Shown piece by piece: positions 19,676 through 54,869 of a DNA stretch of 64,000 bases. A program made the translations under genes and the position numbers. Numbering within the stretch: the stretch's first letter is position 1; every line of letters begins with the position of its first letter. Under the pieces are notes generated by a model that had not been told where the DNA came from, ran no database searches, and saw only the letters and a program-made list of their open reading frames with translations. The DNA comes from Trichoplax adhaerens (lineage: Eukaryota > Animalia > Placozoa), in NCBI RefSeq assembly GCF_000150275.1, contig NW_002060953.1, forward strand, positions 228,286-292,285. The letters are read 5' to 3'.

Positions 19676-21701
19676 GTTACATAGAAAATATCATCATTCA
19701 CTTAAATGCCAAGTTGTCAACAAAAAAAATGGTAGCTCTCTGGATACACTCTGACTTATTATTACTATATAGAAATTTCTAAAGATAAGGTAATCCTTAA
19801 GGCAAAGCAAATACATAAATATACTACGTTTATATTCTAAATGATACTGCTTTTCTCTTGTTATCAATCAGTAATTGTACCAAATATAATGAACCTCCAA
19901 ACTAAGGTCATTTATCTACATAAATTGGTCGTTATCAGCTATACCAATTGGTCATTGCTACCGACAAATTTATAAAGTAGACAAAATTTCCTAGAGAAAA
20001 TTTCCGTTTTGCGTTCATTTGGATTTCCTAGATTCAGAATATGTCCTAAACTAATTCCGTAAATGAATTTATAAATTTAGAATCCCTTTTTTAAAGTTCT
20101 AGATTTTTAATGATATTAGTTGAAAAAAAAGCCAAATTTAATCCGAGCGTCTTGACTACAAGGGTTCGTGATATAAAATTTGACAGCTATTATATTTTAA
20201 AATTTATAGATATCCTCCTTAATAAAAGACCATCTATTATATGCTACTAGACCATAATAAAAAACATTATTCATAGTTACTGGTAGGCGTGATTAGATAG
20301 CTATTCTATAAATAGCTTACAAGTTACCATTAATTTCAGCGATAATATATATGTATGTTTTATTTAAAATTAAGATAAATTTAAAATTTATGGAGCTGGA
20401 TCTTATAATGGATTAAATTGAAGGCTCCATATAATAGCACAGCCATGTAATGTCGGTAACTAAATTAAATGTAGAGCTTATTCTAATTAGATCTTCATTA
20501 TATTAAACAATTGCAATATTTACAGTATAGGTTTGCATAAACTTACAACATGTTGCGACGTATACCTAGTAATTTTATATTTTGATTATAAACTAAAATG
20601 ACGTATTTCAGATTTTAGTAACCTTAAGTTCAGCATCCCATGATTAATAATAAACACAATTAATATTTGAGAAAGTGCTATATTTTTTATAATTTTACTA
20701 CACTCAGCTTGCTACCAATTATTTTAGTAGACTACCAGTAAAGCTATTACTTTGAGTATCCAGTAACGTAAGCTTTATCTCACCAAAATTTGATGCCATA
20801 AAATGGCGCTTGACTATTTCTCTCACACATGACGTACAACTTGTAACTAAATCAACTGTATTCATATGTAGTTATTTCTGAGTAAGAGAAAATTACGTTA
20901 CGATAACTGAAATCAATTTATCCGTAAAATATACAAGAAGGGTATACATAATATGAGATTGCGTAATTTAGAAGAATAAAATCAAAACTACGATATTACA
21001 TCGGTCTTCTTAACTTAGCATAGTTATAGACTATAAGCCATACAAATAAATAAGATAATTAACATAAGCATTAATTTTAAAATTTACTGGTACATTTCTT
21101 CTCAAGAGTACTTCGCGTATCTAGTTTACTTATACGTGTACATTTTGGGTCTGAATAGTTTTATTATCAGCTTAGAATTGTATAACTGTATCACTTAATC
21201 AAAAAATAATTTGGTAACAGTCACATAGCCTTAAATCGCAACACAAACATACACATATATGTATATAAATCGAAGTTATAATAGGAAAATAAAACTACAG
21301 TACTAAAGCTACTTCTGTAGTATTCCACCAATAAAAACTTATCTATGTAGGGTAGTATTGAAACTATAGCAATTTTCGTTTCTTGCTATTATATTAAAGT
21401 AAGGTACCGTAGTTGACAATTGTGTAAAGCTTGAGAGAAAACTTATGTACAATTAACTACAGTAAGAAATATAGCAGCCTTTAAATTTTAAATTATATTA
21501 TTTCGTCTAACGACTGCAAAGAAGATTTGCCTAGAAAAGTAAATAGTTGCAGATGTGCGTTCAATTATAACTTCATAATATGAGAAAGGCTAAAATATGT
21601 TATTATTTTCATTATTAGCTTCATTTGGTAAGCACAGCCAATTATACAATTTCTTCAGTACTATCAATATATCTCTTGAACAAGTGAAAGCTCAATCGAA
21701 T

Positions 21702-21717
21702 ATGGACGTTAATCAAG
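21702..21717 (+). CDS. Candidate distal alternative first coding exon of the ETS gene (MDVNQ-G)
   Basis: AATATGG start context, then CAAG|GTAAGT consensus donor in phase 1. In-frame upstream ATG at 21597 and a second phase-1 donor TTTG|GTAAGC at 21627. The link to the ETS gene is inferred. Confidence 0.35.
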
Positions 21718-22038
21718 GTAAGTTTATGCATTCCTTATCAAATGAATTATTCATAATTTTAATCTTAATTTGTTATCAGATACTGAGTAGCAACTAGTCA
21801 ATTTAATCTGTATATACTTGTTTCGTCAAACCAAATGAACGAGTATCCTTAATTTTTTACAAATATACCACACTAAAACAGCGTAAATTTATTCAAAAGA
21901 CAAGCTTCATTCATCAATAGTAAAAGACTGATTAGCTGAAATATGTATCATGAAGTTATTACCAGCACTCTGCAAGAACAACATCCATCTCTTGTTTATT
22001 AACTAAATTTCTAATATAAATGGATGCTAATGCTACTC

Positions 22039-22668
22039 TGTCACAAAACAGCTTTGCAACAAGATAACGCAATATACGATCAATAAGTCAATTCCTTGAA
22101 CCACGTATCAAGTAACGATATCTGCACTATCATAAACACTTTTGCTCTACTAGCAGACTACACAAAGACTTAAACGCCTCGTATTTTACGTTAAACACCA
22201 AGTTGGAGAATTCATTTTATTTCACGATATACTGCATTTATATGCTACTCCTCAATAGTTCATGAGTCATAGTTAATACAATTAACATTAGAATCATTTA
22301 CTGAATTAGATATTAATTTTAGCTACTGCTCCCTTAATGCAGACAACAGTATTTACGAATATAGACATGTAATGACTAATACAGAATAGTCAGATTACGA
22401 TATGTCCTATCACGGAACATTTCCATGATAATTTACAGTCTACCATAAGTAAATTACAATCACAATGATTCGAATTGTAAGTAGATGATTTGCATTCCCT
22501 ATTATAACTATTAATTTCAGTATGTGTATAAGTGTCACTGTCATAAAAAGTCAGTGCTATATTAAAACACAGTATATCCAAATTAGAAGTTAACTAAATA
22601 AGGATAGTCTAACAGAATTATCCTAACATAGTTATTTCTACTGTAATACAGTATGTAACACTGTAACA
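22039..22668 (-). mobile_element. Solo LTR, family A copy 2 (630 bp)
   Basis: Reverse complement of 376-1006 with scattered substitutions. Has its own TSD TACTC (22034-22038, 22669-22673). Confidence 0.92.
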
Positions 22669-25216
22669 TACTCATATGCTAATATTTCAAAATTAAATCA
22701 AAATAAATGAATTATTCCGTCTCTTAAGAATATCAAATCAATTTAATTTCAGCCCTGAATCTTATAGCAATTACTAGAAACATTTAATAGAAATGACTGA
22801 AGACTTCGTAAATTTTATTAAAGATAGAACTTCCCTGTAGTAGCAAAATGTGTCACTATGTTTTCACTATTAGCATTTACTTAGTATAGCAGATAAAAAT
22901 CGTTTTCCCTTAAACTTCCAGCACTTTTGCTTCCGTATATAGTCTACATCTTGCTGCATTTGCCGGTCTTTTTCACCTAAATGAGTACTTTACAAATACA
23001 CTATGGGAAATTACTAGTGTTGTAATTATATCTGCGCAGCAATAGCATTATAATTATAGCTAGTAGGAGTATTACGATTGTCAGTACGAAGACTGATTTT
23101 ATCAATGACATTAAATTAACCTCGTTATTCTTAACAGTAATAATCGTGAATTGTAATAATAGTGACTCTATATACCTTAAATAGTGATTTTATTTCCATC
23201 CATTATCGTAATAGAACTTCCGTAATAATGGTAATGAGTCTAAAAATCGTTTTTTAATTTTTATATCTACCATAAATCGTTATTTTCATATATAAGCTAG
23301 TATTAAGTTGCATCTTTATTACATGAAGAATAATTACAAAGTTACTACGTAAGCATCAATCTTCCATTCCAAAACTCCTTTTGTGATATTAAGATATCCT
23401 CTTCAGAGTGTTAGAGGTTCCTAAAAAAATTATCAAAGGGGTTTCCATTGTCAGTACCTAGTACTAAAGTGCGTATTTCAGACATTCAAACTGAATTAGA
23501 AATTTGTCATTTTAAACGCAATTAACTATAATACCAAGCTTTTTAATAGTTTCGACAGAAATAAACATTATAGACTCGCTTTTAGATATATGATATATGA
23601 TATACACCGTACTGTAGGTAGGAGGAGTCTTTCTAAATAAAAAATCGATCTTGATTAAGTTATCAAAAAATACTTCAAGTTTATTGCTGATATGAACAAG
23701 CATTTTATTTTCAATACGAAATAATATTGTAAATTTATAGTTTTGTTCGGCATACGATGGTGATAGGTATCAGAACATAACATGAAAGTACTTATTTCGG
23801 AATGAACATGAATTAGTTTCTAGTCGGCTGCTAGCAAGCATCTTTATTCATCTCAGTATTTCAAATTTTAAATAATTCAACCAGACTCGCTACGTCTACA
23901 TCCTTTTTAATTTTAGCCTAGATATTTTTGTTACTTTCTTGATATTATATGGGACAAAAAACTATTTATTAATCATTTTTTATATAATTTATAAGAGACG
24001 AAATAGTATTAGCTGATTTCTTTCAGCTAGTGCCCACCCTCATTGAGCAATTTATTATAATTCTCTGCCATGCAACGATCCTTTTATTTACCTCATCTCA
24101 TGATAAACAAGTATTATAATACAAATGCTAATAGGTCATTTGTGGCACGTAAATATACATTTCTAAAGAAATAAATCCATGAATAGAAAGTAAAATACAA
24201 GGATCAGGTCGTTATGCAATCTCTTGTCCAATCATCCAAGACACCTTTAATCTTTATTGCTCTTAGTCAGTTAATTTGACAACATCCTTTTAATTCCTAT
24301 TGCTATCGGCAGTAGCTGTACCTTACGAAATCTTAGAGCTTGCTTTGGAATACGTTTACTTCCTGTTACCTTATCTTTTCCATTATCGTCATTAGAAATA
24401 GCTTCTAAAATAGTATCTTCTGCACGTTCCTTTTCCGCATTCCATGCTTTAGTACAAAAGAAGGCATTTAACCTCATTGTCTTGCTTTGAAAATCGATGT
24501 TATCCTAGCTATAGTAAATCGTTTTAAACTATTAACTTCACTTCAAAACATCATTTTAAAAGTTATATTTTAAAATCTAGCTCTAATAGCTAAGTGAAAC
24601 TATATTATAACACACATATATTAAATGTTTAGTAGAAGTATATCGATTATTTGCTAAGTATAAACTTGATTGATAAAAAGTCACTTCTTCAATTACCATC
24701 ATGGCGCGCTAAAGCTCCAATGTTGTGTGTTTTACTTCAGTTGGCATGGAGACATTCTATCATTCGATGCCCTTCTGTTTATCAAAAAATCATCACGGAT
24801 ACTGATAACTATGGCACTATCCTCAACCATAATGCTTTCCTTTCTTTTCGTGTAACTACAAATATATTTCCTATTGCTATATTAACTACCGCATTGCAGT
24901 AATTTTACCTCACACAAAAATTTACTGCCTCAATAATTGTGCCACCCTAACCTTATTTTTTTATGGCATCGTGACTTAACGATTTGTTTTAATCTTATTA
25001 TGTCTTAATTCATCAAAGTAATATTTTTTTACTTTAATAGCGTAGTATTTCTTTAAATTGATACTATATAGCATCATAAGTGTCTTTAGAGAACTGTGAC
25101 GCCTGTCTGAGCGTCCTAAAGCATAGACTAGCATATAGCAGATCAATAGTCATAATTATTCCTTGCTAAGGACGGATGAGGGGGTAATATAGCAACAATG
25201 TAAAACTCTAAGAGCC

Positions 25217-25766
25217 TGTGATATATACCAATCACGAAATTCCAATCTTTAGAAAAATAAGGGCTTTATTGAATCTTATGCTAAGATTAACTACACACAG
25301 CTCTACTCTAGCCGAATACTACTTCTAAAGACTTCTACAACGAACTAACAGAATAATCTAAAGTTGCATGCTTTATACTTTTCGTAGCATTCGCAGCTAC
25401 AATCCGTATGGCAACCTTTTACCTTATATTACACTTAGTTAAATTATTCTTAGTAAGACTATTCTACTGCGGACCATCATTAATCCAATATGGATACGAC
25501 TACAGTACTTACGTAGACATTATTCACACCAGCCAAAGTACAATGAATTAACTATATCCTAATATATGATTTACAGTTCTATTTTTACCTATAGCCTTAT
25601 TAGTAACTCAACCCCTTACTGTATATAGTCATTTGTACTCTAGCATAAAGTCTATACCACTACAGTCTATAGTTACAGCTACCAAATATCTCTTAGGATA
25701 AAAATCTACCGTGCATTATACTAAACATGGCTAACAGTCTACAATCACAATACTAGTTACATTACA
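25217..25766 (-). mobile_element. Solo LTR, family B copy 2 (550 bp)
   Basis: Reverse complement of 9515-10065. TG...CA ends. TSD GAGCC (25212-25216, 25767-25771). Confidence 0.92.
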
Positions 25767-31064: not shown

Positions 31065-31106
31065 GCGCGGCGGGTTATTAACTTAATAGTTCTATATGAC
31101 GTCATA
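31065..31106 (+). promoter_or_regulatory. Candidate promoter: GC-rich box plus perfect CRE palindrome
   Basis: GCGCGGCGGG at 31065-31074. 12-bp palindrome TATGACGTCATA at 31095-31106 containing the CREB/ATF site TGACGTCA, ~110 nt upstream of ATG 31214. Confidence 0.5.
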
Positions 31107-31213
31107 ATTCTAATTTAATAACCATACTATGTTCCATTTATAATGCAATAGTACCTGGAAAACTGGATCAATCATCCTTTTACTATCCCATCAAATCACC
31201 ATTACTTTGGCTA

Positions 31214-31271
31214 ATGTCGGAAAACGAAACTAAAAGACCACCACCAAACCTTGGCATGCCTATGCCATCAG
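31214..31271 (+). CDS. First coding exon MSENETKRPPPNLGMPMPS-G, probably an alternative first exon of the ETS gene
   Basis: ATG-initiated, GC-richer Pro-rich codons. Consensus donor CAG|GTAAGT in phase 1. CRE and GC box just upstream. Confidence 0.6.
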
Positions 31272-32689: not shown

Positions 32690-32908
32690 CCGAAAATTTT
32701 AATTTCGATATGACAACTTTAGATAACAACTGGAGATAATGACGATGGTGTTGGAATGGTAAAAGCGCCGTTCATTACGTTTAACATACCAATTGTATTT
32801 GGGATAACCGATAAAAAGAATATCAATTATGATACCATTACTGATGCATTCGATATCAGAAATAATACTGACGACGGCACAACTGATTATAATAATGTAA
32901 AATTGATA
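32690..32908 (+). other. Exon-like segment (219 nt) with strong splice signals but no continuous frame
   Basis: Acceptor TTCTATTCTCTTACAG| at 32689 and donor ATA|GTAAGT at 32908. The phase-1 reading stops after AENFNFDMTTLDNNWR, while a different Asp/Asn-rich frame is open from 32723 through the donor. Confidence 0.4.
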
Positions 32909-35900
32909 GTAAGTTTGCAATAATACCGGGTATCTTACCAATTATAACTGATAGTAAGTCTCCTGCTCAAATGAATATTTAAAAAAGTACTATCAATGAT
33001 TTCATAGTTAAACAGAGATCGCTTTAGTATTGATATACTGATAAAATGAAAGCAATGAATAAATATAAACTAAAAGTCAACATTTTCGATTTCCTGATAC
33101 ATTGATCTAACCATTTTACTATAGTAACTTAATAGTAATATTTATGAAAGGAATAGAATTAAGCCTCCTTTAGTCGCATTCTTAAGTCATCATTCATCCA
33201 ATAGGCTAATCAAATAACTACCGCTATCAAATCAAAGTAATTTATCGAAAGTGGCCTATAAAATGCACAATAGAATAGCAAACGGAACTTAGTAAAACAA
33301 ACTTCCATAAGGACTTTTTAAATGTAAATTACATTTCAATAACTAGATAACCCTATTCTGTTTTATTAGTATCCATAATTATATTTAACTAATCTTATCG
33401 GCATAATCGGCATAATCGTCACGATTATTCCAGGAATCTTTCTCAACAGGACTTCCCTGGTGCAGTCTTACTCTTTGATAGACTCGATTATTTTACACAA
33501 TGATAATTATATCTACCCAGATTTGATCGGAAAACCATTATACAATTACAATTACCCAATGATAAATCATCCAGAAAGATATTTACCAACGGCTTGAAGG
33601 CTTTAAGCAATCTAAAATGGGTATAAAGAATAATCTATCGATAATATTAAGTATCAAGCTTATAGAATTTTCTAAAAGAATAAAATCAAATTCTAATGGC
33701 TATACTTAAAATTAAATTCTCAGATTGGATAAAACTTTGTGATGTACGAGCAAGCTAACACATCATAACCTTAACACAATTAAGTCGTTGTTGAAAATTT
33801 ATGGTTTTGACAAATGCTTAGTTGGTAATACAAAACACTAAGCTTTTCTACTGTCATTCAGCCGGAATTATTAAGAATTAATTGCTAACTTCGAGATTTT
33901 AGCATTCATTCGGCACTACTAACCATAACAGAGTATTGTAACCTTGATATCTGAAGTCTCATAGATACATTTTTCCCTCCCTAACAAAACCTCATTTTTT
34001 CTTTATTTAAATATACCAGGTACCGAGGTAGGCTTTAATCTTTCTTATCTGAAACGCAACTTATCCTAATTTCTAAGACAATGTATTGCCATTCATTCAT
34101 TCTTTTACCTGCCAATTCTGAAGTAAAAATAACTACAGAATAAATATGAAAATAGATTCATCTTTTAGTATAAAATTTCGGTTAGCTTCTAACCTACTGT
34201 ATAAAGTCTAATTTTGAATTGGTACTTAAAAATTATCATTTTTAGTAGCGTAATCATCGCAAAGTATCGATCACTCCTTGAATTATACCGGTACTCATTA
34301 TGTCCTTCCTACTATGTAATTATCACAAAGTTAGGCGATTAAATACATGGTGTTCAATTTGATAATTAATTGTTTCTATTCAACAACCGACTATAGGAAT
34401 GATGATAATATCCCGACTCATTATTCTTTCCATTTCCTATTGCTTTTAACTTTATTATGGTCAAAGTAATTGCAGATAGCAGAAATGTCCCCTTCTTATT
34501 CAATAATACTTATTACTGAAGCAAAAAAATCCTAAACACTGAACAGCATCTCATTCTTTATCAGCTACTGTGCTAAAATTTGGTAAAGAGCACTAGATAA
34601 AATAAGAAAAAGTTCAACTTTATCCAAAAACATTACATCAATAATTCTTATCAAAGCTGATTAATCGATATCAAACAAAAGATATGAGCAGCAATCGTTT
34701 GTAATTAATCAACTCAATTGGATACGGTTGATTGAATACCCAATCATATCTATTTCGTTTAATCATGTTTACTTTGACAAATTTTAATATTAGGTTTCAT
34801 CCTGGCATTGTTATTAATCATCGTTTATTTTTACTTTATCTAGAGAATAGTTCGTCATATAGCTGATCGAGAGCTAAAATGAATATCGATCATAGATAGC
34901 CGCTTGATGCTTTTAAGGCACATACAATATAATAGCTCACTGGAATAAATACCTTATTTTAGTTTACTTCCGTAGCTAATAAATAATTATCAGTAAAATT
35001 ATAAAATAATAAAATCATGATAATCATTCAATTGTAGTCAAAAGCTATTCTATTTCTCATCTATTATGCAGTTATTATTTACCCCTCACTTCCTTCGCTC
35101 GCTTCTAACTATTAATAGCCACTTCCTCTAGAACAAATCAAAGAGTATGACTATTTATCCATTTCTTTATAGCTTCCTTTGATTACTAAGCCATCAAAAA
35201 CAATTTTGTAATCTCGGTTATTTATTATTATCTATTGAGCTATATTTGATCTTATTAATATCTATATGAAAAGGCTAAGACTGCATTCATGTTGGTTAGC
35301 GTGATTGATTCTAAAGACAGTTTCAATGCCATTGTTGATCGCTATCTTCCTGTTTTTAACCGACTCATTGATTGACAAGGCACTTCCATCTTTAAATTGA
35401 ATTACTTTCAATTACTATTGATAGATCAAAATTCAATCTAATATTTTTCTATAATAAGTTTGCAGTGATTACAAAAATACAATTCTTAGATTTTATGCAA
35501 CTAATTCATATATCCTATTCAGTAAAAAAATTATAAATAATTTGATATAGATAAAATTTTTCAAACAAACTTCAAGAAATATATCGCACTATAAGTATTA
35601 CTGAGCATTTCTATAATTGATAGCAGATCAGTAATGTAGTAGTAAATGTGTTAGGTTTGGTAACTTTTAATCATATGCGATAATGTAGAGGTAAAATCAA
35701 AAAGGCATTAATACATTATGTGCCTTAGCTATAAGTAGCTGCTAAAAATCGGCAGAAGAGGCAGATATTTCGCTGATGGTATTCTATAGCAGTGTCATGA
35801 ATTTACGAACAGGTCACAGTTATCTTGTAGCTGATAAGTAAATTCGCTATTAACAACTGAACTGAAATATTTAATTTCAATGATCAATTTAATATCCTAA

Positions 35901-38399: not shown

Positions 38400-38444
38400 A
38401 TTCTTAATCTAAATTTTCAAGGAATTCTTAATCTAAATTTTCAA
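38400..38444. repeat. Direct duplication of ATTCTTAATCTAAATTTTCAA (21 bp, period 24)
   Basis: Two exact copies at 38400-38420 and 38424-38444. Confidence 0.9.
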
Positions 38445-41400
38445 AGAAAAGAGAAATGATGAGAATTAACAATCAAGAATAATGAGTACTATATTATTCT
38501 GAGCTCATTTTCTCTTCTGATTGAAAATGTTTTATCTTAGTTGACAACAATCTTTAACATTTAGAATGCTAATTCTAGAAATAGATAGTATTACAGAAAA
38601 ATAGTAATTAGAAGAGAGATAGACAGACATGTGAAAACCTGTGCTAATGACAAATAAAGAGAATATAGAAATTTTATTCTCTTCATAATCAATAACTATA
38701 ACAAAGACATTCCTTCGGCGCAACAATAATCTAAATTAAAGCGGCAATATGAAATAGCTTAAAGTAATTTAATTGATACCGCGGAATAAATAAGAATTGT
38801 ATACTCGATACCATAGTACGATGATCTGTGTCTAGCATTTATTTTTTAGATTTCATGAATTTTATAACAGTAGGCACATGCATAATACAATCATATGCTG
38901 ACATATATAAACTGTTCATCAGTCTCCTGATGTGCTGATAGACAGGGCAGCAAAATATGCCGTATCTGAAATCTAGACATTTTAACTTAAATTAATCCTA
39001 CTGATACCTCGTAATTACTGACATTAGAAGTATGATATTGGACATTATTTAGACCATTAGACCATTATGAATGAATGTATGTATGGACAAGGCATATAGA
39101 ATTGTAAAATTAATTTATTGCTTCCTGAAATTAGGATTGTTAACTTATAACGGTAGCATTATGATGCAAAACTATAAGCAATGATCAAGACTGCACGCTA
39201 TAATATAATTTTTATTAAAGAGGGATCAAATATAGTAAATTAAATTAATTTATATTTAAAGGGTGGCCACTTTTTTATTTTTGACTAAAATATTGTATTA
39301 TAAACTGATCAAACTTTTTTAAGATAAGACCAATAATTACTTTTAGTGATTTGTATAATGTAAGTCTGCAGATACTAGTGTACAACTGATAAAATTTCTA
39401 TACTGTCAAGCAAAGATCAAAATCAGAAACAACAATAACAACAATCATAACAACCCAAGAACAATGTATATTAACATTTAACGCTGACAGTAACGGTAGT
39501 CAATCATACTGATCGATTTTATTACAATAAATAAAATTATTGTACGGGGTGATAGTATTATATTCAATCTTCTTTATGGCAATTGATTGGATTGCAATAC
39601 TATAGAATTTGTCAACAGTATTTCTTGATCATACTATTCCCTGCTCAATAGTAAGCATTTTATTTAGTCCTAATTTTCTTCCTGTCGCGCCTAAATGTAT
39701 ACTTTTATGGTACACATTAGCCGGTAGTAACGATTAAAAAAAAATTAGAATAGTTATTACTGGAATAACATCCGATATTGTTAAGAACGAGACTCAAGGA
39801 AGAAATACATCTTGCTTATATAAGAAATGCTCGTAAATATTAATATATAACGAAGCTACTGTTGTATTTAATGCTAATAAAGAAATTCCGCAGCAGATGA
39901 ATCCCAATCGTATACGTACCCATTAATCGATAGGAGGTCCATTTTCAGCCAACAAGAAGCTAGAATTTATTGGTTCTACAGCTGAAACATCTGTAATAGA
40001 ACATCTCGTTTTAAATTAATGTCATAAAAATCTTATGATAGCAGCAAATAGTTTACAAAAGTTAACAATTTTGATCTACGTTATGAACAGCGGCCTACTT
40101 TTTTCAATATATCTAAATAAAAAAATGCAATAGGAATTATATACATCGTGCAGTAATTAGAAATCAAGTGCTGGTAAGATGACGATGAATCTGGAAGTTA
40201 AATATTGTTTATGTATACTGGCTTTGTATCAATGCTCTCTTTAGTCAATATATGGAAGCTCATTCAATCCGACAAATCGTTTATCCTGACAGTACCAGCC
40301 AATATGTGGCGTGCGATTTCAATCTGTTGTTATTAAACTAGCTAAAGCGGATGTGAAGAATGACAGATAAAAAATTGTTTGGAATATTTTGCTTGATAAC
40401 ATTAAAAATCGAATATGATCATCAACAAAACAAGAGTATAGTTACGGAACAATAAATAGAATGGTACAATTTAACTAAGAATTTCCATATAATAATAGAT
40501 GACATTTTAATTAAATGAATAGTAAGCGACAATTAATAGGAAGCTTATTAATGATAATTACTACCTACTAAAATTAACTTGTTGTATGATACTGAACAAT
40601 TCATATCAACGCGAGCTGTTGATTTGTTAAGATTCCATAAACTATAGTTTAATCATTACTACTTCCACCTCCTTTTACATTAAGTCAATGCAACACTCAT
40701 TATAGCTAATCTATTGACTAGAAATGCTCCATTAATCCAATATAATCAATACCCATCTGCTGCTATATGTGCGGCAAATCATTTTAAAGATGAATTATTG
40801 ATTTATCAATAAATGAAGAAAAAATATAATATAAAAATACACATCTTTCATAATGTATTGTATTTATAAATATGATATACCGGGTTTCAGCTTCCTCTTT
40901 TTATAATTTAGTACTATAAACATGTCTTCAATTAAATCAATATCGATAGCTACCGCTCCAAATTAAAAGCACAGATTAGCCCATTTCGAATAGTATAAGT
41001 AAACAATTTATTTGTCATCTAATTCATACCGAGATAGATATATACCTTATTCCTATCACCTCATTACCAATCCACTCTCCCACCTGCTACCATTAACATA
41101 GTAGATTCGGCTGTGATAAAATAGACTGATGCAAAGCTGTAAATCTCATCTTCTATCTTTAAAATAATATTCCTACTCCTTGTAACTATTCTACAGCAAT
41201 TATACTCGAAACGCCAATACCAGAACAGCAAAATATAACATTCGTCAGGTCAATAACAACTAAGATTACTTCTCTAAGTGGATACTTGGCCATTAAGCTT
41301 TGTTACTGTACGTCCAAAATCAAATTTTTACTTGACTATAATACATGGAAGCATTTTGGATACTTATAATCGCAATTGGGATATTCTAAATCTAAGCTAA

Positions 41401-44400
41401 AATTGATTAAATGTACGCCTCATACTTTCTTATAATTTGCTAAAATTTTTCTCTATGGTTGATTACTTTGGTAATTACTCAATCCGCTATCATATTTCTT
41501 TCTAAAAGCCTTTCACCGATTATCGACAGAATTATTTAACAGTTAGTACCAAATTTATCATTTATCTTCATTTGTCAAGCTTCTACTAATTTTGAAAAAG
41601 GTATTAACGAATTGAAAAATTATCCGGAAAAGTTAAAACACTGCCTTATAACAATACAGTTAAGGGTATCGACTCATACAAAAACATACTATATCTCTCA
41701 TTTCCTTATTTCGGTTACTAATTTCAAGAGTTACGGTATTTATCGCCGGATAAATACTAATCTAGAAATCCATATCATCTTAATCTAGACACTAAGTCAA
41801 AATACGGGTGCTGTTCAAATAATTTTCTTTTACTCCATAAATTATTTCATTCAATCTTCATCTATCTACGCTAAAACAACTATTTCGACCACATCGGCCA
41901 TTATCACCATTAGATTGCTAAGCGGCAGATTTAATCGAATTCAAAGATGAAGAACCAGGGTAGGAATTATTTAATCGCAGCTATATAAAATTGTTATTGT
42001 CCGTTATTAAACGTTAGATTAATAATTAAGAACGTTTAATATGTTTATCACTACATCCACAAAAGTGTATTTTAATAATTCTTCATCAAGGCTCCCCTTA
42101 TCATCGCCATCATAATCTTTGTAATTATTTATTCATTTACAGGTTAAGTTTCAATCTATAGGTGTATTATAAACTAACCCCAATTAACGTAACAATAAAC
42201 AAACTTAGGCCAATTCATGCTAAGTACACGAACAAACCTTATGTTTATCGGTAGTATTTTTAATTAGATATCCTGCAAGTTAAACACGTCTGCCTCCTTA
42301 TAACATCGGTAATAAATGAAATAAGAATGATCCTCTTGATTAATGTCTTACACATGACAGATAGGCACAGTTAGTTATAAAGCTGTGAAATCAAGCAATC
42401 CCCGAAAAAATTTTTAAAATGACATATACTAGCAAATGCACCGATCCATCAAGGAATATTGCTGTATATTTGTATGATCATCCTCATAAATGTTACAACT
42501 AATATCAGTAAAATATTCATTATACTAGAAATATTTAGCAATACCAAATAACAGGAATTTTCTACTTTATGTTATAGTTCGAACTATGAAAGAGCTATGA
42601 TGGCATATTACTTGCATATCAATAACTACTGTATTATTTCCATCTACTATCTTTCTGACAACTAATAATTCGCACAGTCTAACCTATTTAAATTACAGTA
42701 TTATAGAGAATTTTTCGTATATATTTTAAATTAATTTTATACGTAGCATAAATTAAAATATCTAACTTACGCCTCAAGCACGTAAAATCAGTCAATTTCT
42801 GTCTAGCAAATAGATTAAGAATATACGTAAGTTAGTAATTTCAGCGACGATGGAAAGCCTAGAATTCCTTCTAGTATTAGACATATGGTAGTCATCTTTA
42901 ATTATAATTCTAAATCCATCTTCATTCTCAAATACATATGAAAGAAATTTACATCATGTATTTTAACATACTCCAACGTCCAACCATTAGCGTTACTAAT
43001 AAACAATTTCTTATCCTGTCAATAGTAGGTATACTGTAAGCGTAAATATTAAATAAGTTGCTTTCATAAAATTACACTTTAAAAAATTCGCTTTACCCTT
43101 TAGATTAGTTACATTTTTGAACCTACAGTTAGACAATATGGTAGGTTTCTTATATATTAAACAATCCCGTAACTGGTTTTTATCCTGCACTAAAACTACT
43201 CCACATGCCTGCCGTTAAAAATGAAATACGTACGTCCGATCATATTTCGGTACAGACAAAAAATTTTAATTCAGTTTAATAGACATGATATTTTCTATAT
43301 TTATTATAGCCAATAATTATTTGGTAAACATACACGGAAGCCATATGGGGGAAAATGTAATAAATTTTCTTACATTAATAGAATATTGCATGTAAATAGT
43401 TATTTCTAAATTTCAGATACACGTATGATTGTGTATACTTTATACACTGAAGCTGGACACTCAGTAGATCGATTGTTCAAACTTATAGTTGTTATGAAAG
43501 GAAGTTATAATATTCACAAGAAATTAAGGATTCAATAAATATATATGATGTATGATAGCAAGTTCAATGTGGCGCTAATACCTTTAAAGAATCTTAGCCA
43601 TTTAGTTCCCCATTCATCATTATAACTGCTCACAAACAGAAAAACCAATCACACTTCAACATTAATTTTATAACAGTCATCGAGCCTTAGTGCCTACAAA
43701 TTCTATCAATTTTGATCATAATTTTATTGATATAGAAAACATTTACTTCACTTCAATTAAGACGCTAAATATATGTGCTTAACCGATAGAGAACAATATT
43801 ACACATGTGAGTATCAATAGTAAGCGATAAAATAACAAACAAAAATACCGAAAAGTCATTCTCTCATACTATAAAAGAATTATCTTGATATTGTAAAAAT
43901 ATCAAACGCAACTACTTTTGAGTCTAAAGGTAATCATTTTTAATCAAAGGTGATAACACGCAAGTTATTTAAATTACACACTTCGAGATTTTATTAGCAT
44001 AGGACGGAATAGATTTTCCATCGCCTAATTTTTTATAGTATCCTAGAATGTTATTTATTTTTTCAATTCATTACTTCAATATTATAATAATCTGCATAAG
44101 TAATAGTGATGGAAGCAATATTGTAAGAATATCCTGTTATTTTATTCCCATATGAAAGATAATTGCTAATTCTTGTACTGAACAATACATTATTTGCATG
44201 GTATCTTTCAGTAATTATTAGTCAATGTAAAAACAGTTTATGTATGATGCTTAGTCTTATTAGAATGCTAGCTTCGCACATTTAATTCGTTAATCGATTC
44301 TTAAAATATAAAACATATTACAGCTTTTTTAGGCGAACATTGGAGTTATTATATCATGTTCATATATCTTTTACCCTAATTCTATAATGCCGGCATGTTT

Positions 44401-44700
44401 CCGTATTTGTTACTGCAAATTAATGATTTTATTTTATCCTTAAATCAAAGTTTTAACAAATGATTCAATGATCGGTAAACATATTGATGAATGATGGCGA
44501 TATAAGGGGTAAAATTTCAGCCGTGAAGAAAGTAAAAAATAACAATAATTGATTAATAATTGCCCATTGATCTAAACTATAAACATGACAGAACCGAATT
44601 CTGTTTATCAAAAAAATAACAATTGATTTAGACAATTTTATTTTTCCAAATCTATTGTAATGATGTCCATTCGGTGGCTGATATTGCGCTTTTAAACAAG

Positions 44701-45147
44701 GCGGTTGCCAATGTTATAGCAATACAACATGGAAAGATTCTATTTTACTTACGCCACCATCATCATGGACGGTCTCATTGCCACAATATCCCACGGTACA
44801 GCATGTTGATGCATTCAATCGACATTGTCATGCAGCCACTATACCGGCAACAACATCAATGTCATCGCCATCAACGTTGCTTCATACTATTTCTTCAACT
44901 CATGACAAAACAACGAATAATTATATCCATCGGGGTCAACTGTTTGACCCAACTATACCTAATACTTCAGTAGACCCTTATAAAACCACCAGCAATTACA
45001 ATAATCATACAGCGGCAACTCCTCTTGTCTATTGCTTCTATTCTCCTACAACTGGTTATCCTTATGAAACAGCAACATCAGTACCCAATGCAGCCACTGC
45101 TTTAACTTCTACCCTACCGAATGATTATAAACAATTTTCGGCTGAAG
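44701..45147 (+). CDS. Ser/Thr/Pro/His-rich coding exon of the ETS gene (internal from acceptor 44700, or first exon from ATG 44859)
   Basis: Frame open 44682-45152. Phase-1 donor GAAG|GTTAGT at 45147. AAG acceptor at 44700 gives a 447-nt symmetric phase-1 exon. In-frame ATG at 44859. Composition typical of transcription-factor low-complexity regions. 5' boundary uncertain. Confidence 0.75.
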
Positions 45148-48100
45148 GTTAGTATTTTATGTTGATTGACCTCAATAAGTACTCCACTTGTTCATGTCGC
45201 TGATAATAATTGTTATCATCATCTTTATTATTATCATCAGTAGCAGCATTATTATCAACATTGGGTTTTATGATATAAAAACCTTCGAGATCTAAATACT
45301 ATTTCTGACATAGCAGTCATCTGGGTACTTCTAAGACGAGTTTTGTTTATCTTTATAGCTATTATTACAAACTTAGGTTAAAATCGAATTATTATAATAT
45401 GAGTAAACATTACGATCACAATCCGATACATTCATCTACTCATATCAACATACTTATAGAACGAGATCGATACCCTATTATTCAAGTAAAATACACCCGC
45501 AACTGAAACATTCAGGTATCAATTGATTAACTTCTACACAGAAAATGCTATAAAGTTCTTAAAATTAAAGTAAATTATGGTCTTTATTTTCTCTATTCCA
45601 ATTAAAAGACTAACACGGAGGTATATCACATCTAGCTTAATCTCCACTTGAGGACACAACATTCTAGCTTTCACACACATTCGTACTTTATGTATAATTC
45701 AGTTAGAAAGAATTATTTTATCATTTTGTAGCGTATCCTTCCCAGACACTATTTCATATTTGCAATGTTTACCTATGCAGAAACTGGTAGATCATTATAC
45801 GTAGACAAGCAGTTTTCTTAGATGACTAACAGGAAAATTTCTACACCGTTATCAGGTTCAGTACCTGTGTCGTAGAAACAGTTCCGTTTATTCCAAGCTG
45901 ATTATACCAAAATTCTATTGCAACTACCGTAGTTAATAATCAATACAGATACACAGTTTTCTCCTTTCAAGCTATCCATAATGTATAAAATATAATCTTT
46001 GTAGCTTCACAATCGATATAATTTCCTCTCTTTTAGTCGAATCAGAGCATACTCATAACTCCTTCTACAATATGCATAAACTATCTTCCTCAATCACTAC
46101 TTAATATTTGACTCTTAACGGGAGCATGTAGGAGACCAGTATAAATGATATAATTTATCTTTGGAGTGATAAGTTGCTAACAAGCAACGGTTGTTCAATT
46201 TTTGTGCTCATAAAATCTAAAACTATCGTTACATTTCATTTCATCCTACAGCGTAAAGATTTCGATTTGATTACCATCTATTGACTCATTGTATAAGCTC
46301 TAAGAAAGATTATCAGTAATAATTCTCAAGTAATATAAGAAGAACTAATGGATGATTTTCAACTACGATAGTATTGAAAGTAGTGAATAAAGGTCTTAAC
46401 TTTAATGTTGAGGAGAACAAGCTTTCAGGTCGTAATAGGAATTAAATATGGAAATTTACAAAGTCTATACGTAAGATAGAACGTAGACTAATAAATAGGA
46501 ATCACGCAAGAGAAGTGTATCTAGCCAAAGTCAATCATCACACTAAATGAAACAAAAACTTTTATCTTTCCAAGAAAACTTTCCTTATTAAATTCTATGC
46601 TATACGTAAAACCTTACTTAGGAATCTTTCAGTTTCCTGAATAATAATCAACCAGTCAACTAGAGTATCCATTTAACATCTACAATAAATAGGAGGGATG
46701 TACTTTTAGCGATACTGAAGGGATATTAAAAGTTCTTTCTTATTTACCGTTATGTTCCGGGTAGACCCTAAATAATATTATAGTAGCAAGCTGTAATGTC
46801 ATATAAACTAGGCTATCCTAACAATTAATGCTATGAGAGTAATTAAAAGACTTCTTAATTTCTAAATATTTATTAATAAATTATTAATACAGAACTTTAA
46901 CTATTTCAACTCTCTCCTGTGACTAAGTATCAACTACTAATCGCATATCCTATTTGATATTCTGCAATGAGTAGAATGAAACAATTTTTAGCAGAAAGTC
47001 TGTACTTATTACTTATACGTGGTAGCTATCGAAAGTACACGAATGTAAATCTTTCACTACCTCAAACAATAAATCTCTATGGTTAGGTGACATTATATAC
47101 TTATTTACCGCGATTTTGAAACACTAGTAACCTCGCCAGTCAGTATCTAACTCGGTATGAGCTATCAATTAAATTACACTAACTTAAGTCAGCTATTAAT
47201 CAATGGCAACGCTTAAACTTAACTTTTCAAATGCATCGAGTGATAGCCAATAGTGACGACGAAAAGTCAAAGCATGCAGTTGTGAAGTAAGTCTGCTTTC
47301 ACTGAGCTTAGACTAGGCTTCTATCGAAAGTACCATATTATATGTAGAAGAATTATGCTTCTACTTCCGTTTTGGAATAGTTGCTTTAGTGCTATCTATT
47401 CAATCATCCAACTTTGATATTTCTATTGATGTGTTCTTTCTTAATTTGCAACAAAATATACCTTAGTAGCTAAATTTATCTTGATAAAGCGGTTAAAGTT
47501 CTGAGCTTGGAAACTGTCAGAGCAATTCTTGACCAATTTTTCCTTGCAAAACGGTACTTCAGCAATAAGCTAAATGCATCGTTCATTTTTCAAAATTATC
47601 AGTATGGCCATAAAATCATTTTTCATAGCTAACTTCGTCTTTATCGCCTACTGTATCAGCTAATTATAGCAGTTATGGTTAAGAACTCATACACTACGAT
47701 TATATATCATTAGATCTTTAAATCCAATTATAACAGCGGATTCATACTTCTATATATTCACTTCAGTATTGTAAGTTTACTATGCTCAACTTATAGGTTT
47801 GCAATCCTTTATTTTGGTTCCTAGTTCTATATTAATCCTGTCAAGATAACTTTATGTCATAAAAATAGAAATACAGGTTACCTCATATTCGTAATCAATT
47901 TTTTCAATATTTTCTACCGCTATCCAGTCCACTGACTGAATTATGCCTTTCGGTAGTCTAGCGCCATTAAGCGGATGCTAACGAAATTTTGGCGATCGCA
48001 ATATCAAGGCTTCTAATGATCCTTTATTCTCTATTTGTATTAATCGCTTCCCATTACGAGCGACAGAAGTAATGATACAAAGTGACACTATAAATATCTT

Positions 48101-49070
48101 ACAGCCAATTTAAACTCCGTCATCTATTTGATTTAATCTGATATTTGCCTTGCAGAGAAAAGATCAATTCGTTCTCTGATATCTTAGTTTATCATACATT
48201 GATATATTTGTTTTATATCTGGAGAAATAGATAAGACATAGACTTTATCTCCAGTAACTGTGAATGTTTAGTCATGATTTGTCTTCTTTCTTATACCTTT
48301 ATTCACTCGTAGCCTTGCTCTATATGCTATACAAACGTTCCTTTTAAGGTACTTAGCAGAAAATAACAACGACAAAAATGGTTATGAAGAGATTAAAAAG
48401 GGCAGAATCAATTCATCTGCATTACCGTTTCCAGGTCTCATCACTTATCGTTTAGATTACTATAGCTATTCACTATATTAAACTTAAACCAAGGGCTTTT
48501 TATTACTGAATGGATATGTATAGTATAACTTGAGATTAGTTTTATCGATTACCACAAATGTAAAGAAATTGTGTTCTACATATTATTTCAACGCTATAAG
48601 CGTTTTTTCGGGAAATGTCTTAAGTTTTCATAGTCTTGCTTGAAAGCAGTCTCTACACTAACTAGAATTTTACAAAGTGACAACGGTCCCAATCAATTTT
48701 CTTACTCTACAGAAAGTAAAATTGCTGTCATTCCGTATCATATGTTTGCACAGTACTATCTAATTGATTCAAATTCGGTGGAACGACTAATACAAATTGC
48801 TTTAAAGGTGTAGCCAGACTATTTTAGCCTTGTAGATGGATGTTTGATGCCATAGTCTCTTAAAAAAGTCACCATTCAATTAGAATTGAGCGTCAGATTC
48901 AATGCGAAGATTCCGCTAATAAATTGCTGAAATACTACCGTTATACTACTTTTAAATGATTCACTTTCTTTTCCTGCAATAGATTGCGTAATTATGCGTA
49001 TACATATATTTGCGTTTAAATTTTACAAATAAATAATTCAATTGAGGTCATACTTTTATGGGCCCACTGC

Positions 49071-50668
49071 AATGCGGAAGTGATAAGTCAGTTATTATTC
49101 AATATTAGAACATTTATCCTTATACTGCTTTTGTTCCATACTATCCACAATATTGGATACTTGCTGAAAAATAGAATCCTGGTCAATTGAAATAGCTCTA
49201 GCAAATAAAATTAATCAATGATTCAATACTTACTATTCACCCAAAATCTGTATCAACTGGCTTTCTTATAATATTTCCACTACCTGTATCTGACTTGATA
49301 GTATTAAAGTAGCTATACTGAATCTTAGTTTCCTATGATAACTTTTAAATTACCGGTATCTAGCTCTAAAGTCATATCAAATAGCCATATTGGCTGGATT
49401 CCCTAGGATTGCATTTAAATTATCAGTATCGAACTCAATGGTACTTAAATTTGACGATATTGGCCGACGCTATTTATTCAATTAGCAGGCGTAACAGAAA
49501 CGCAATGTTCTAATAGTTTGCTCTCATTATCGAATATTGATAATACGCCATAAAATTTCAAATGTGGGCTAGACCATTCTTGCTTTTACTTCTTCTGATA
49601 CAGCAACATTGGAATATAAATCAGATAATCACCCAACAAGGAACAAGGTAATCATCGAACGTACTTCCTGTTCCACCTACAGAACGACTAATGATATCCA
49701 TAATGTAGAAAAAGCGACTGAACTGCTACAACATTAGCTTCCAGTTTTGTCTTTCCATTACCGATGATCGGTTATCTTTGTGGTCATTTCCGAAGAAATA
49801 ATTTATTCTTGTGCTAATAATACAACAAGGCTAAAAAATAATAATAACCGAAACTATACTATTTTATCGCACAATTTATACTGATATCTTCACTTTATAT
49901 TACACTATGGGTTAACTACTCCGACGCTAAACTCTAATAATTTAGCAGCACTCAAATCCGGAAGTATGTCTTTGACTAGTTGGAAAGGTACGATATAAAT
50001 GAGCATTGTCAATGATATCGTTCAGTTAACATTGAACATTTTGAGCTAATGGATCAGATTGCCAGTTCACTTTATTTATCGTGATCGAAATGAATATAAA
50101 CCACTAATAATTACTTTCCTCAAGCATTCTTCCCTCAAGAAATTATCACAAAAACTCTTTCCCTTTATTGTTTTTTGTTGCCATATGCAGTGAAAAAAAA
50201 TTCAATTTGCATCATTTCTGACAATTACTCTTTTACCGTAAAAGTCTGATAATTATAATCGTAATTGATCACTTGGACTAGAAATATACGTAACTTTATT
50301 TACCTTTTGGCTTATTAAAGAATAATAATTTTTCTGATGACAGGGTAAAAATTAAAGTTTTACTTAGCTCTACTTCCCGAATTAACCAACTACCGTTGTC
50401 ATTCAATGGAGTTCCTATTACCACTGCAAATGCCTACTCTAACTATAAGCATTTTTTAAATTTTCCAATTGTTTGATCCGATTCATTTACTATAAGTCTT
50501 AAAACACAATAGATTAATAAACAGGAAATAAAATTCTATGTTTACTTCACTAGGATTTATCAATAGCTTATTCTTTTCTTTTGTCCCTGTGATTAAGAAT
50601 ACAAAGTTGTAGAGAAAATATACTTCCGCAATTGGATACTATTTAAAGTGCAGCCTACAGCGGGAAGT
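49071..50668. promoter_or_regulatory. Cluster of ETS-type GGAAGT sites upstream of the proximal first exon
   Basis: AATGCGGAAGT 49071(+), ACAGGAAGTA ~49662(-), ATCCGGAAGTA ~49956(+), CGGGAAGTA 50371(-), TGCGGAAGTA 50621(-), GCGGGAAGT ~50660(+). Confidence 0.5.
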
Positions 50669-50882
50669 GTTCATATAGAATAATACGGTAGTTGAGATTA
50701 CCTTTTCCATGAGCTATAATTCTACTCAAAAATTCAAATAGAACTGTATCGCAGTATACTATAATCGTTTAAATTGCACTAAAAAATTACAACTTAAGAC
50801 TGTCAATTAATTGACGAGAGTAGAATATCAATTTTATTAGCTTCCATTTATTATCCACTTCTCTCTATTGCTATTCAACACC

Positions 50883-50976
50883 ATGGCAGTCCTTGAAACT
50901 TGTCCTTCAACGGTCTATAATACTAACTCTAACTTATTTTTTATGCCAACATGTCCTAAACCAATCGTTTTAATGG
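50883..50976 (+). CDS. Proximal alternative first coding exon of the ETS gene (MAVLETCPST...PIVLM-G)
   Basis: Kozak context CACCATGG. 31 codons + 1 nt, then donor ATGG|GTATGT. 188-nt intron to acceptor 51164. The spliced product is an uninterrupted 201-aa ETS protein. Confidence 0.7.
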
Positions 50977-51164
50977 GTATGTTAAGCCCAACAACTTTGA
51001 CACTTTTGATTCAATATGGGATAATTCTAAACAGTGATTCAATCGGTTGAATGGATTGATAGTCCAACATTGAGATATGATTTTATTTTAATACACAATA
51101 CAAATAGCTTCAAAGTTGAATTAGTTATTTCTCATTTGTTTAATCATTTCTCTTGATCTCTTAG

Positions 51165-51215
51165 GTAATCCATACTGGCAGGGATATCCGGATGGTCCTT
51201 CGCCATTGCTTCGAG
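51165..51215 (+). CDS. ETS gene common exon (GNPYWQGYPDGPSPLLR)
   Basis: Pyrimidine tract + TTAG| acceptor, GAG|GTAAAT donor. 51 nt, phase 1-1, no stop. Confidence 0.8.
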
Positions 51216-54004
51216 GTAAATAGAAAATAATTACAAAATCGTGCTATCTATCGTGCTCGTCTTTCATCTTTAGTACCAACAAGATTAATTATAAATATGC
51301 CCACAATGTTATTTTTTGCAAATAACTTTCTAAACTTAGTATTGGGAGAGAATATATCGATACTTGTCACTAAGGTACTTCATTTAAAAAGTGTTACTGG
51401 TTTATAGCACATTAGCAAATAAAGTAAAGAAGAACAAATGGTAAAATCGCATGTGACTGCAGTCCTCTAGTGCGATAGTCGTTGTTACATTGTCAGTAAT
51501 CCTTCATTCTAATCGTTGATCTAAGTCAGAATTGATAAAATATGACCCAAAATATCAGATTATCCATCATAGTACTACCATTGTCGCAGCAGGGCCCATC
51601 TCCATGATGGCCACTAGAAGTAACTACAACCAATGCTACAACAAAAGAAAGAAACCTATCTATGGCTACAAATTTATAAATAGCAATGGCTTACTAATCC
51701 ACTTTATTCCTGTTCTAATCCAAGCAAATATAACTACTCCATTTTCTTTGTGTTGTTAATTTAGATTTTAATATCAGATCTAGTTTACCGTCCTTTGCAT
51801 TGGACTTCTCATCATTTTTATTCAGTCTTTTTTATCTTATTTTTCTTTTACTTTCTAATTCCCGCCGTTTTGATCATTACTATAGCTATTTCAGAACTAA
51901 AAAATTACTAATTATCCATGCATATTTTGCATTTAAAATCAGTACAATGAAACAATAGTTGCTATGCTTATGCGTTCTAACAGTAGACGTACAATATGTG
52001 AAGGACTATAACTTAGACTGATTTGAATTAGCAATTTTCAGCTAAGATCACCATTTGATCGACATAACTCACTTTTTATCAGTGACAGTTATCTTAAATG
52101 CTTTTAAAATCACATACCAAATTATGAAAGTGAATGTTCTATTCATCATATAAAATTATGAAATCTACTATGCGTATAATGGAAAATTACCGAGGTTTTA
52201 GTCCTTAATTCAGCGAACTCAGTCTAATAAGGGATATTCTATCCGTCTGTTCTATCTAGTTGAAGGCGTTGAATATTAAAACAGTTCAAGCTTCCCTTGA
52301 AATAGGGGCTATTAATAGTATACTACACTTTCACAGGCAGCAATAAAACTTAATTTACAATTATAAATTCTTCTGTCTGGAATTATATCAAGGTTTCCTC
52401 GAAACTAACTTAGACTGGAAGTACAGAATAGGGCTTTAACAAGTTATTATTGTTCCCATTGATTTTAATTTACATCACTATAGGACTTTAATTAAATTTT
52501 CATAACTTATAAATCAATGTAGCAACATTCCATATTGATTTTTGTTGACTTATGAAAGGCAACGTGTTTTCAATACTATCCATTTGTTATCCAATTAGTA
52601 AATTGTCCTTCGTGTCTGAAAAGGTTACTTAAAAGAAAGGAATGTATAGGAATGATGTCCAACTTGAATTCAGTTGTACATGAACGTCGAATAATATATC
52701 TCCATAGAGCACCTGTGTTGTAGGCTGTGCAGAATTAAAATCACAGTGAAACATTATATTCTGATCCCGACATATTTGTAAATAAGTTTTTTAATACAAT
52801 AGCAATAGCTGTTATTATTGCACAAAGCTTCCCTCATAATAATGAAAGGTAGCTTGATGATTTAGAAATAGTAGCTACTGAAAGTCTAGTAAATCTTGTC
52901 CAACTCGAAGCTACCATAAACGCCAAATGTATTTCTACAATCTATTACGGCAGTCTACTCTGATATAATAATAGCGTTAAACTGTCCATTATTTCTATGA
53001 CATTATCATAACCTTTAATTTAAACTCTGCTTTGCTTATTAAATGCATCGAAGCATAAAAAAATAGCTTATAATGCATTCCTTATTATTTGAACATACAA
53101 ATAATAATCTATCAATTTCCTATAGTTAGACAAACAATAAAACCTGATAAACATTAGGTCGTTAAATATTGGGGCGGTTAACGAGAATATTATTACTATA
53201 CATAGCAATGTTATTTAGTCATAGCTTAATTGAAATTATTTTCGATCTTATTAGTCAAGCTATTGTAAAGTCAATACTTTTTATGGCATTTTGCCTCTCA
53301 AGTTACTGAGGTCATCTAGCTTTACCTGTTTATCTTATACGTTGAAAGTAAATCATTTTTTTAAGTATTTTATTTAAAGATAATTAAATAGAAATTACAC
53401 TTTATATCGATAGATCTTGTTATATATTAATAATTTAAATCCTAATTTGATGTTTAATCTTTTACACGATTGATCGTACACTTAATAACCTCTAAATTTA
53501 TCGATGGTAATCCCCATTGATAACTTATCCGTATTTCTGCCTTGGGTTAGGGCTTTTCCATCTTAAGCAATGCTAATTCAAGTAGCAATTTGTGTATATT
53601 ATACATGCTTCATCCTTAATCAGTTAAATTCGGGGTTACTCACGATAATGTTATTTGCCTCAGCAAAGCTACCGTATAAAATAAGTCTTAGATCTACAGC
53701 ATATGGCCTATAAATATAAGGAAGGTAGATTCATTGATTGACATTGAATATTAAATCACTGCAAATAATGTAGGATTTTCTTATAAATCTTGTCTCGTGA
53801 CATTCAGTTATTACCGCAAAGCGGATAATTCATTATGCTTACTGAATAGCGTTATAATACGCCACTTAATAATATTTATAACCTCGATTCATAAATATAC
53901 TTGCTTATTTTTATGTTATCGATTCTGTGTAAAATTAAACTAACTAAATCTACAAGAATGATATCAATTAGCTTCAATCACTGATTGTATTATTATTCTT
54001 ATAG

Positions 54005-54109
54005 TTAAAATGGAAGGATGTCATCTTCCTCCAACTACTCCTTATTCGCACCCAAGTCGCCCTAATGTCAATTATCATGCAATGCCCAGCGACCATAGCA
54101 TAAACAAAG
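54005..54109 (+). CDS. ETS gene exon (VKMEGCHLPPTTPYSHPSRPNVNYHAMPSDHSINK)
   Basis: CTTATAG| acceptor. 105 nt, phase 1-1 if the AAG|GCAACT GC donor is used. Pro/His/Ser-rich. Confidence 0.7.
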
Positions 54110-54258
54110 GCAACTATAATAAATTAGCAAAATTTTATGAATAACTATTTAACCTGTTATATATAGTGCAATAGAGTAGGATAAGATATTGATTAGCTTA
54201 TCCCTCCAATTTACTGATAAAATATTAATCGACAATTTGTTTTAATCCTTCAAATCAG

Positions 54259-54315
54259 CAAATCCTTATTTAGTATCGCCAAGAATATTTAAGAATGGAA
54301 AATTTTTACCACCAG
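54259..54315 (+). CDS. ETS gene exon (ANPYLVSPRIFKNGKFLPP)
   Basis: ATCAG| acceptor, CCAG|GTAAGA donor. 57 nt, phase 1-1, no stop. Confidence 0.8.
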
Positions 54316-54570
54316 GTAAGATAAGATGGTCATGATATCGTTGAGAATTGAAATACGGATGGTTATTATAATAGTTATCAATCCCATAGTTGAAAGTAAT
54401 CGAAGGTTAAACATAGCTTGTAAATAATATAGACTCAACCTTTGCATAACTACAAGGTGCATAGAAATGGGATCTTTACTGTTATATTCATAGAATGTGC
54501 ATCTAGCTAATAGAAGAATCCAAAGGTGCAATGCCTAATAATCAATTATTTTATGTGTATTAAATCATAG

Positions 54571-54869
54571 TGACCAAAAACTGCTCCTATCTATGGCAAT
54601 TCCTGATAACTTTATTGGAAGATTCTCGTTACAAAGACATTATTTCATGGATTGATAAAAAGGAACGCATTTTTAAATTGCGCAATCCAACCGCCATTGC
54701 ACACCTATGGGGATATCACAAAAATAATGATACCATGAATTATGAAAAATTAAGCCGTGGTCTACGCTATTACTATACGAAAGGCATTTTAGCTAAAGTA
54801 CCACGACAACGGCTATGTTATCAATTTTTGGATGACACCGACAAAATTGCCAAATCCGAGCTCAAATAA
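54571..54869 (+). CDS. ETS-domain transcription factor, terminal exon (class II, ELF/E74- and TEL/Yan-like)
   Basis: Complete ETS domain: YLWQFL...ISW.DK...FKL...A.LWG.HKN...MNYEKLSRGLRYYY..GIL.KV..QRL.YQF. CATAG| acceptor in phase 1. TAA at 54867-54869. Confidence 0.97.

Follow-up and report, generated by a model that had tools for sequence, protein, structure and literature searches.

A placozoan ETV6/ETV7-type gene with a possible nested two-promoter layout in a gene-poor region of the Trichoplax adhaerens genome

Does the long, nearly empty stretch in front of an ETS transcription factor gene of Trichoplax adhaerens hold a ladder of alternative first exons, or does the gene begin much closer to its DNA-binding domain? 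The question was raised by an initial annotation, which had proposed four ATG-initiated first exons (A, B, C and D), all spliced in frame to a shared ETS domain within a transcription unit of about 33 kb. We analyzed the entire window of 64,000 nucleotides (nt) (scaffold C1404:228286-292285), which has a G+C content of 30% and is very poor in genes, with five open reading frames (ORFs) of at least 90 amino acids, three of them in the ETS locus and one encoding a rhodopsin-type G-protein-coupled receptor (GPCR). The locus is a placozoan ETV6/ETV7-type ETS transcription factor gene that is already present in public annotation. Its supported extent is ~41.9-54.9 kb, a unit of ~13 kb, and two start exons at most (at 41.9 kb and 50.9 kb) are supported. 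At a probability of roughly 0.55, we favor a single gene in which all exons are phase 1, two 5' ends are initiated by their own ATG, and the distal start unit (exon 1 and exon C) is spliced on to the ETS exons.

The argument is comparative. A cluster look-up in Trichoplax sp. H2 identified two proteins, RDD38905.1 (P0006; TrispH2_009521, 154 amino acids) and RDD38907.1 (P0008; 'Transcription factor ETV6', 201 amino acids), which follow each other in that order on NOWV01000155.1 with no gene annotated within 10 kb upstream of exon 1. A deeply diverged placozoan was represented by Logan assemblies, which yielded a 155-residue ORF (P0005) as well as contigs L003 and L004; the two contigs jointly span the orthologous locus, starting ~10 kb upstream of exon C and including the Ets exon. 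A third placozoan lineage is represented by metagenome contigs L001 and L002, which contain exons e2 to e4. Word searches with the Ets exon, exon C and RDD38907.1 returned placozoan fragments only, and an alignment of exon C scanned against the metagenomes of the Joint Genome Institute (JGI) gave no match. All comparisons were made exon by exon, and every one of the exons described below (exon 1, C, D and e1 to e4) is conserved in the distant placozoan, which also retains the order of exon C, exon D and the ETS exons.

The proximal 5' end starts with exon D (50883-50976, + strand), an ATG-initiated first coding exon of 31 codons plus one nucleotide that ends in a phase-1 donor (GTATGT) and supplies residues 1-31 of the H2 'Transcription factor ETV6'. 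Exon D is conserved and collinear in L003 (tblastn E = 0.007), with its ATG displaced two codons downstream relative to Trichoplax. An in-frame TAA is found 30 nt upstream, and the interval lacks any AG. Given this upstream stop and the lack of an AG, exon D can only be a first coding exon in L003. Annotation and conservation both mark D as a genuine first exon with its own ATG. It is followed on the same strand by e1 (51165-51215; 51 nt, phase 1-1), which encodes RDD38907.1 from residue 33 and has conserved AG and GT boundaries in L003 (E = 1e-6), by e2 (54005-54109; 105 nt, phase 1-1), which continues the protein from residue 50 and is conserved in both L003 (E = 2e-6) and L001 (E = 5e-8), and by e3 (54259-54315; 57 nt, phase 1-1), which continues it from residue 85 and is likewise conserved in these two contigs. 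The donor of e2 at 54110-54111 belongs to a GC-AG intron in Trichoplax (AAG/GCAACT); since both L003 and L001 have a canonical GT at exactly this position, the boundary is confirmed. The last exon, e4 (54571-54869), carries the Ets DNA-binding domain and the stop codon TAA (54867-54869). Its match to Pfam PF00178 spans positions 2-81 of the 81-position profile (E = 8e-34; 116 bits vs a cut-off of 26.9), and its amino acid identity to L001, L002 and L003 is ~80%. No Pfam domain was found in the part of RDD38907.1 encoded by D to e3. Checked exon by exon, D, e1, e2, e3 and e4 together make up the 201 residues of RDD38907.1, which is also the 201-residue form of the initial annotation. The downstream exons named there are all phase 1, as stated, and end at 51215, 54109, 54315 and 54869; the protein lengths it listed (189, 201, 266 and 338 amino acids) are consistent with the confirmed boundaries.

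The distal 5' end was only partly recognized in that annotation, which placed a first exon at the ATG at 44859. Exon C is instead an internal exon of 447 nt (44701-45147, + strand, phase 1-1), with a conserved AG acceptor at 44699-44700 and a donor GTTAGT at 45148; an acceptor at 44701 had been named from the outset, and it is real and conserved. The reading frame is open from 44682 to 45152. Exon C is 51% identical to P0005 across its whole length, including the 52 codons upstream of the ATG at 44859, and the Met encoded there is Leu in the ortholog from the distant placozoan. On this comparison, the ATG at 44859 is internal to a conserved exon and is not a conserved start codon. No in-frame ATG is present in Trichoplax between the upstream stop (44679-44681) and 44859, and this, together with the conserved acceptor at 44701, requires a start exon farther upstream. 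Such an exon lies 2.7 kb upstream of exon C. The coding part of exon 1 (41947-41959, + strand) is 13 nt long and reads ATG AAG AAC CAG G, encoding MKNQ and contributing the first base of the next codon; it is followed at 41960 by a phase-1 donor, GTAGGA, and corresponds to the start of RDD38905.1. L004 encodes the same four residues, differing at two third codon positions, both synonymous, and its donor GGTAGGAAT matches that of Trichoplax exactly. The real donors of the ETS gene are weak (GTAGGA, GTTAGT, GTATGT, GTAAAT, GCAACT and GTAAGA), and exon 1 had been missed because the donor set of the initial annotation did not include GTAGGA. Exon 1 and exon C as the start unit of a distal 5' end are real, as the H2 annotation and conservation demonstrate.

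Exon C also matches TRIADDRAFT_59433, an older JGI model of 120 amino acids composed of 44859-45147 and 46371-46445. This model, apparently a misprediction, starts at the non-conserved internal Met and finishes with an exon (46371-46445) that the other placozoan lacks. Overall, the public models (TRIADDRAFT_59433, TrispH2_009521 and the H2 'ETV6') already include exon C, exon 1, and D to e4, but none of them connects exon C with the ETS exons.

How the two 5' ends relate to each other is the central question of the locus. In the arrangement we favor, transcripts from the distal promoter would carry exon 1 spliced to exon C, which would most likely join e1 directly and skip D, giving a long form of ~323 amino acids with a domain-less, probably disordered N-terminal region. 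Transcripts from the proximal promoter would start with D, and splicing of D through to e4 would give the annotated 201-residue protein. The outcome would be a two-tier nested-promoter gene, a layout that we consider plausible. We infer the splice of exon C into e1 solely from the conserved phase-1 donor of exon C, whose phase is that of every downstream acceptor. The end of the exon, AAG/GTTAGTAT, is identical in L003 and matches the donor consensus at 7 of 8 positions, and conservation ends directly after it. The length of 323 residues, like that of 352 residues considered below, is arithmetic on exon lengths. No Pfam domain was found in the product of exon 1 and C, and structure prediction returned no confident fold (mean predicted local distance difference test, pLDDT, of 30, which from a 3-row alignment is weak evidence). 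The lack of a domain or confident fold is what is expected of the activation region of a transcription factor.

Several observations weigh against this single gene, and most of them speak for the arrangement in the RNA-informed H2 annotation, which has two independent genes. One would encode a 154-residue protein from exon 1 and C, of unassigned function, ending at the TAG at 45150-45152; the other would encode the 201-residue ETV6-like protein from D, and no isoforms would share the Ets domain. The H2 models RDD38905.1 and RDD38907.1 are indeed separate, and the first ends at this TAG, which lies inside the exon C donor and is met in frame when the donor is read through. The TAG needs an unusual T at donor position +3, which is conserved in the other placozoan and fits a real stop codon; P0005 likewise ends in ...EG. 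No protein uniting exon C and the ETS exons was found among database proteins of 111-352 amino acids, and exon D has its own conserved ATG. However, the donor that contains this stop is near-perfect and conserved over 8 nt while the sequence following it is not, the phase of exon C fits all downstream acceptors, and exon C, D and the ETS exons have kept their order in the distant placozoan. Furthermore, the 154-residue product lacks any domain or fold signal and has the low-complexity composition typical of a transcription factor activation region, and the older JGI model did use the exon C donor. We consider two separate genes a possible but distinctly less probable arrangement. Note that retention of the intron at the TAG (45150-45152) would by itself yield a 154-residue protein without the Ets domain. 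A further point against two 5' ends is a possible AG acceptor at 50888-50889, found in Trichoplax alone, which could make D internal. Under this proposal, a single promoter at ~41.9 kb would produce one 352-residue protein with D as an internal exon (50890-50976), and the ATG of D would be incidental. The AG lies 7 nt into D after a pyrimidine-rich stretch and keeps phase 1, but in the distant placozoan this AG is missing and an in-frame stop occurs upstream, an ATG is found at the start of D in both species, and the H2 model begins at the ATG of D. We consider this arrangement highly improbable.

Two further proposals extend the gene much farther upstream, and they draw on a feature, a domain of strand skew reaching back to 19 kb, that our preferred two-promoter gene leaves outside its explanation. 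The initial annotation took segments A and B as real first exons that splice, one or both, to 44701 or 51165, so that 21.6-54.9 kb would be one multi-promoter unit. The four segments are present as described (21702-21717, 31214-31271, 44859-45147 and 50883-50976, with donors GTAAGT, GTAAGT, GTTAGT and GTATGT), and each breaks off after the first base of a codon. As first exons they fared unequally: D is genuine, the ATG of C falls inside a conserved exon, and A and B do not exceed what chance would produce. Segments A and B (both + strand) have perfect GTAAGT donors in phase 1 and are single copy in the genome, and B, with its local GC of ~47% and Pro-rich translation, resembles real exons. 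However, the number of comparable sites equals the chance expectation. Between 19196 and 44700, donors of the types used in that annotation with an open in-frame phase-1 ATG occur four times on the + strand and five times on the minus strand, and first-order Markov simulations predict 3.06 +/- 1.77 of them on the + strand (P(>=4) = 0.36). When donors as loose as the gene's own are allowed (GTAGGA, GTAAAT, GTAAGA), 70 phase-1 ATG candidates appear upstream of exon C. Because these numbers match chance, A and B carry no statistical weight; they are ATG-plus-GTAAGT coincidences of the kind that any 25 kb of such DNA would give. No comparative DNA reaches them, the left end of the available contigs (L004/L027) matching ~34.1-34.7 kb of the window and the full Logan contig being only 518 nt longer. 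Both segments are without annotation as first exons, the start codon for exon C is already supplied by the conserved and annotated exon at 41947, and the 10 kb preceding that exon contain no annotated exon in H2. The documented unit is consequently ~13 kb long, and a four-step ladder acting as a 33-kb timer is unsupported. We regard first exons at A or B as highly improbable.

The skew domain is the remaining argument for a long unit. A two-change-point fit delimits a region of C>G strand asymmetry at 19196-54293 (+ strand) with a mean skew of -0.117 (z = -12); 32 of its 35 1-kb windows are negative, vs 16 of 28 outside it. On the 3' side it stops where the ETS gene ends, and the skew of the orthologous DNA in the other placozoan agrees in sign and size, also in the part upstream of exon 1. 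Control DNA from the same scaffold (200 kb) showed no such domain, with no 25-kb window above an absolute skew of 0.065. Repeats were considered as a source of the domain and do not explain it. These features could be taken to favor the ladder, but putative introns of ordinary Trichoplax genes have a sense-strand skew of about zero, so the domain does not prove transcription, nor does it count as evidence for exon A or B. One could still imagine that it is the mutational footprint of a very long primary transcript starting at ~19-22 kb, near segment A, with far-upstream leader exons feeding the ETV6-like gene. We think this unlikely; if true, it would be an exceptionally long multi-promoter transcription unit for a ~100-Mb genome with short introns.

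The same upstream DNA contains conserved non-coding sequence. Upstream of exon 1, three blocks were identified by blastn to L004: one at 34693-35360, collinear and 68-88% identical, one at 39389-39810 (E = 2e-23), patchy and motif-like, and the largest at 40336-41100 (E = 1e-51), with islands of identity. A fourth element lies in intron 1 (44448-44504; 84% identity over 58 nt). These four blocks are 67-88% identical to the placozoan sequence, with short perfectly conserved islands, where the protein identity of exon C is only 51%. The blocks at 34.7-41.1 kb were considered as exons and rejected: they show similarity in several reading frames and contain stops. Similarity in several frames indicates non-coding conservation. 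A mini-exon in the intron 1 element (ATG 44487, donor GTAAAA, phase 1) was also rejected, the other species having no phase-1 GT there and H2 using the exon at 41947. The large conserved non-coding blocks are thus confined to intron 1 and the region upstream of exon 1, with none between C and D, a distribution that speaks for a single gene. Distal enhancers have been documented in T. adhaerens (PMC12221973), and the blocks at 34.7-41.1 kb are probably upstream enhancers of the ETS gene.

The initial annotation had assigned the factor to the ELF/E74 class, an assignment that its relatives do not support. Among solved structures, six ETV6 chains score highest against the Ets domain (92-96 bits), ahead of ELF2 (91 bits) and ELF1 (90 bits). 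The locus is one of seven Ets-domain loci found in the genome. The published gene trees of Najle et al. 2023 (PMC10580291, Table S4) place TriadT29770, with TrispH2_009522, Hhon_g09719 and HoiH23_PlH23_007262, in orthogroup Ets.HG1.15:ETV6/ETV7, and they fill the ELF-type orthogroups with other Trichoplax genes. From the adjacent locus tag (TrispH2_009521 being RDD38905.1) and the name, we take TrispH2_009522 to be RDD38907.1. The ranking of Protein Data Bank (PDB) chains, the NCBI name and the published orthogroup agree that the class is ETV6/ETV7. A six-frame genome search for the PNT domain (SAM_PNT, PF02198) at E <= 10 gave five matches, none of them in the window, and the domain is present at two other Trichoplax ETS loci. 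The Elf-1_N domain (PF12310) had no match genome-wide in a search that was silent in control genomes as well. The protein therefore has an Ets domain of ETV6 type but lacks the PNT domain by which TEL/Yan proteins are defined. It resembles ETV6/ETV7 (TEL) and Drosophila Yan/Aop in its C-terminal Ets domain and in its top scores to ETV6 chains (96 bits), and its H2 ortholog was named 'Transcription factor ETV6' by NCBI. Unlike ETV6/TEL/Yan, it has no PNT/SAM domain in the window, and the scores of ELF2 and ELF1 are only ~5 bits lower.

Any likeness to E74 would be one of layout. In Drosophila E74 (Eip74EF), nested promoters produce E74A and E74B, and the isoforms of ELF2/NERF are similar. If exon C joins e1, the Trichoplax gene would share with E74 a distal and a proximal promoter, unrelated N-termini and a common C-terminal Ets domain. 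It differs in having at most two tiers, not four, in spanning ~13 kb vs 60 kb, and in not being an ELF/E74 ortholog.

Elsewhere in the window, the GPCR ORF (62448-63668, - strand) is intron-less, encodes 406 amino acids of the rhodopsin family (Pfam 7tm_1, E = 6e-32), lies downstream of the ETS gene in convergent orientation, and has a 398-residue ortholog in the H2 annotation. Scans of the window with Rfam and for transfer RNAs gave no matches. Two young dispersed repeats are present as inverted pairs (376-1033 with 22012-22668, and 9516-10067 with 25215-25765), the copies of which are 92-98% identical; each has one copy in the desert upstream of the ETS gene. A third, weaker family occurs at 25372-25627 and 59148-59410.

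The main value of these results is a correction of annotation. The model TRIADDRAFT_59433 takes a non-conserved ATG as its start and an unsupported exon as its end, and a conserved 13-nt start exon is added 2.7 kb upstream of exon C. The neighbor listed as a "hypothetical protein" and the ETV6-like gene may then be a single gene with two promoters. If this is true, the use of distal and proximal promoters on an ETS factor, accompanied by a conserved cluster of upstream non-coding sequence, would already be present in placozoans, a useful but expected finding.

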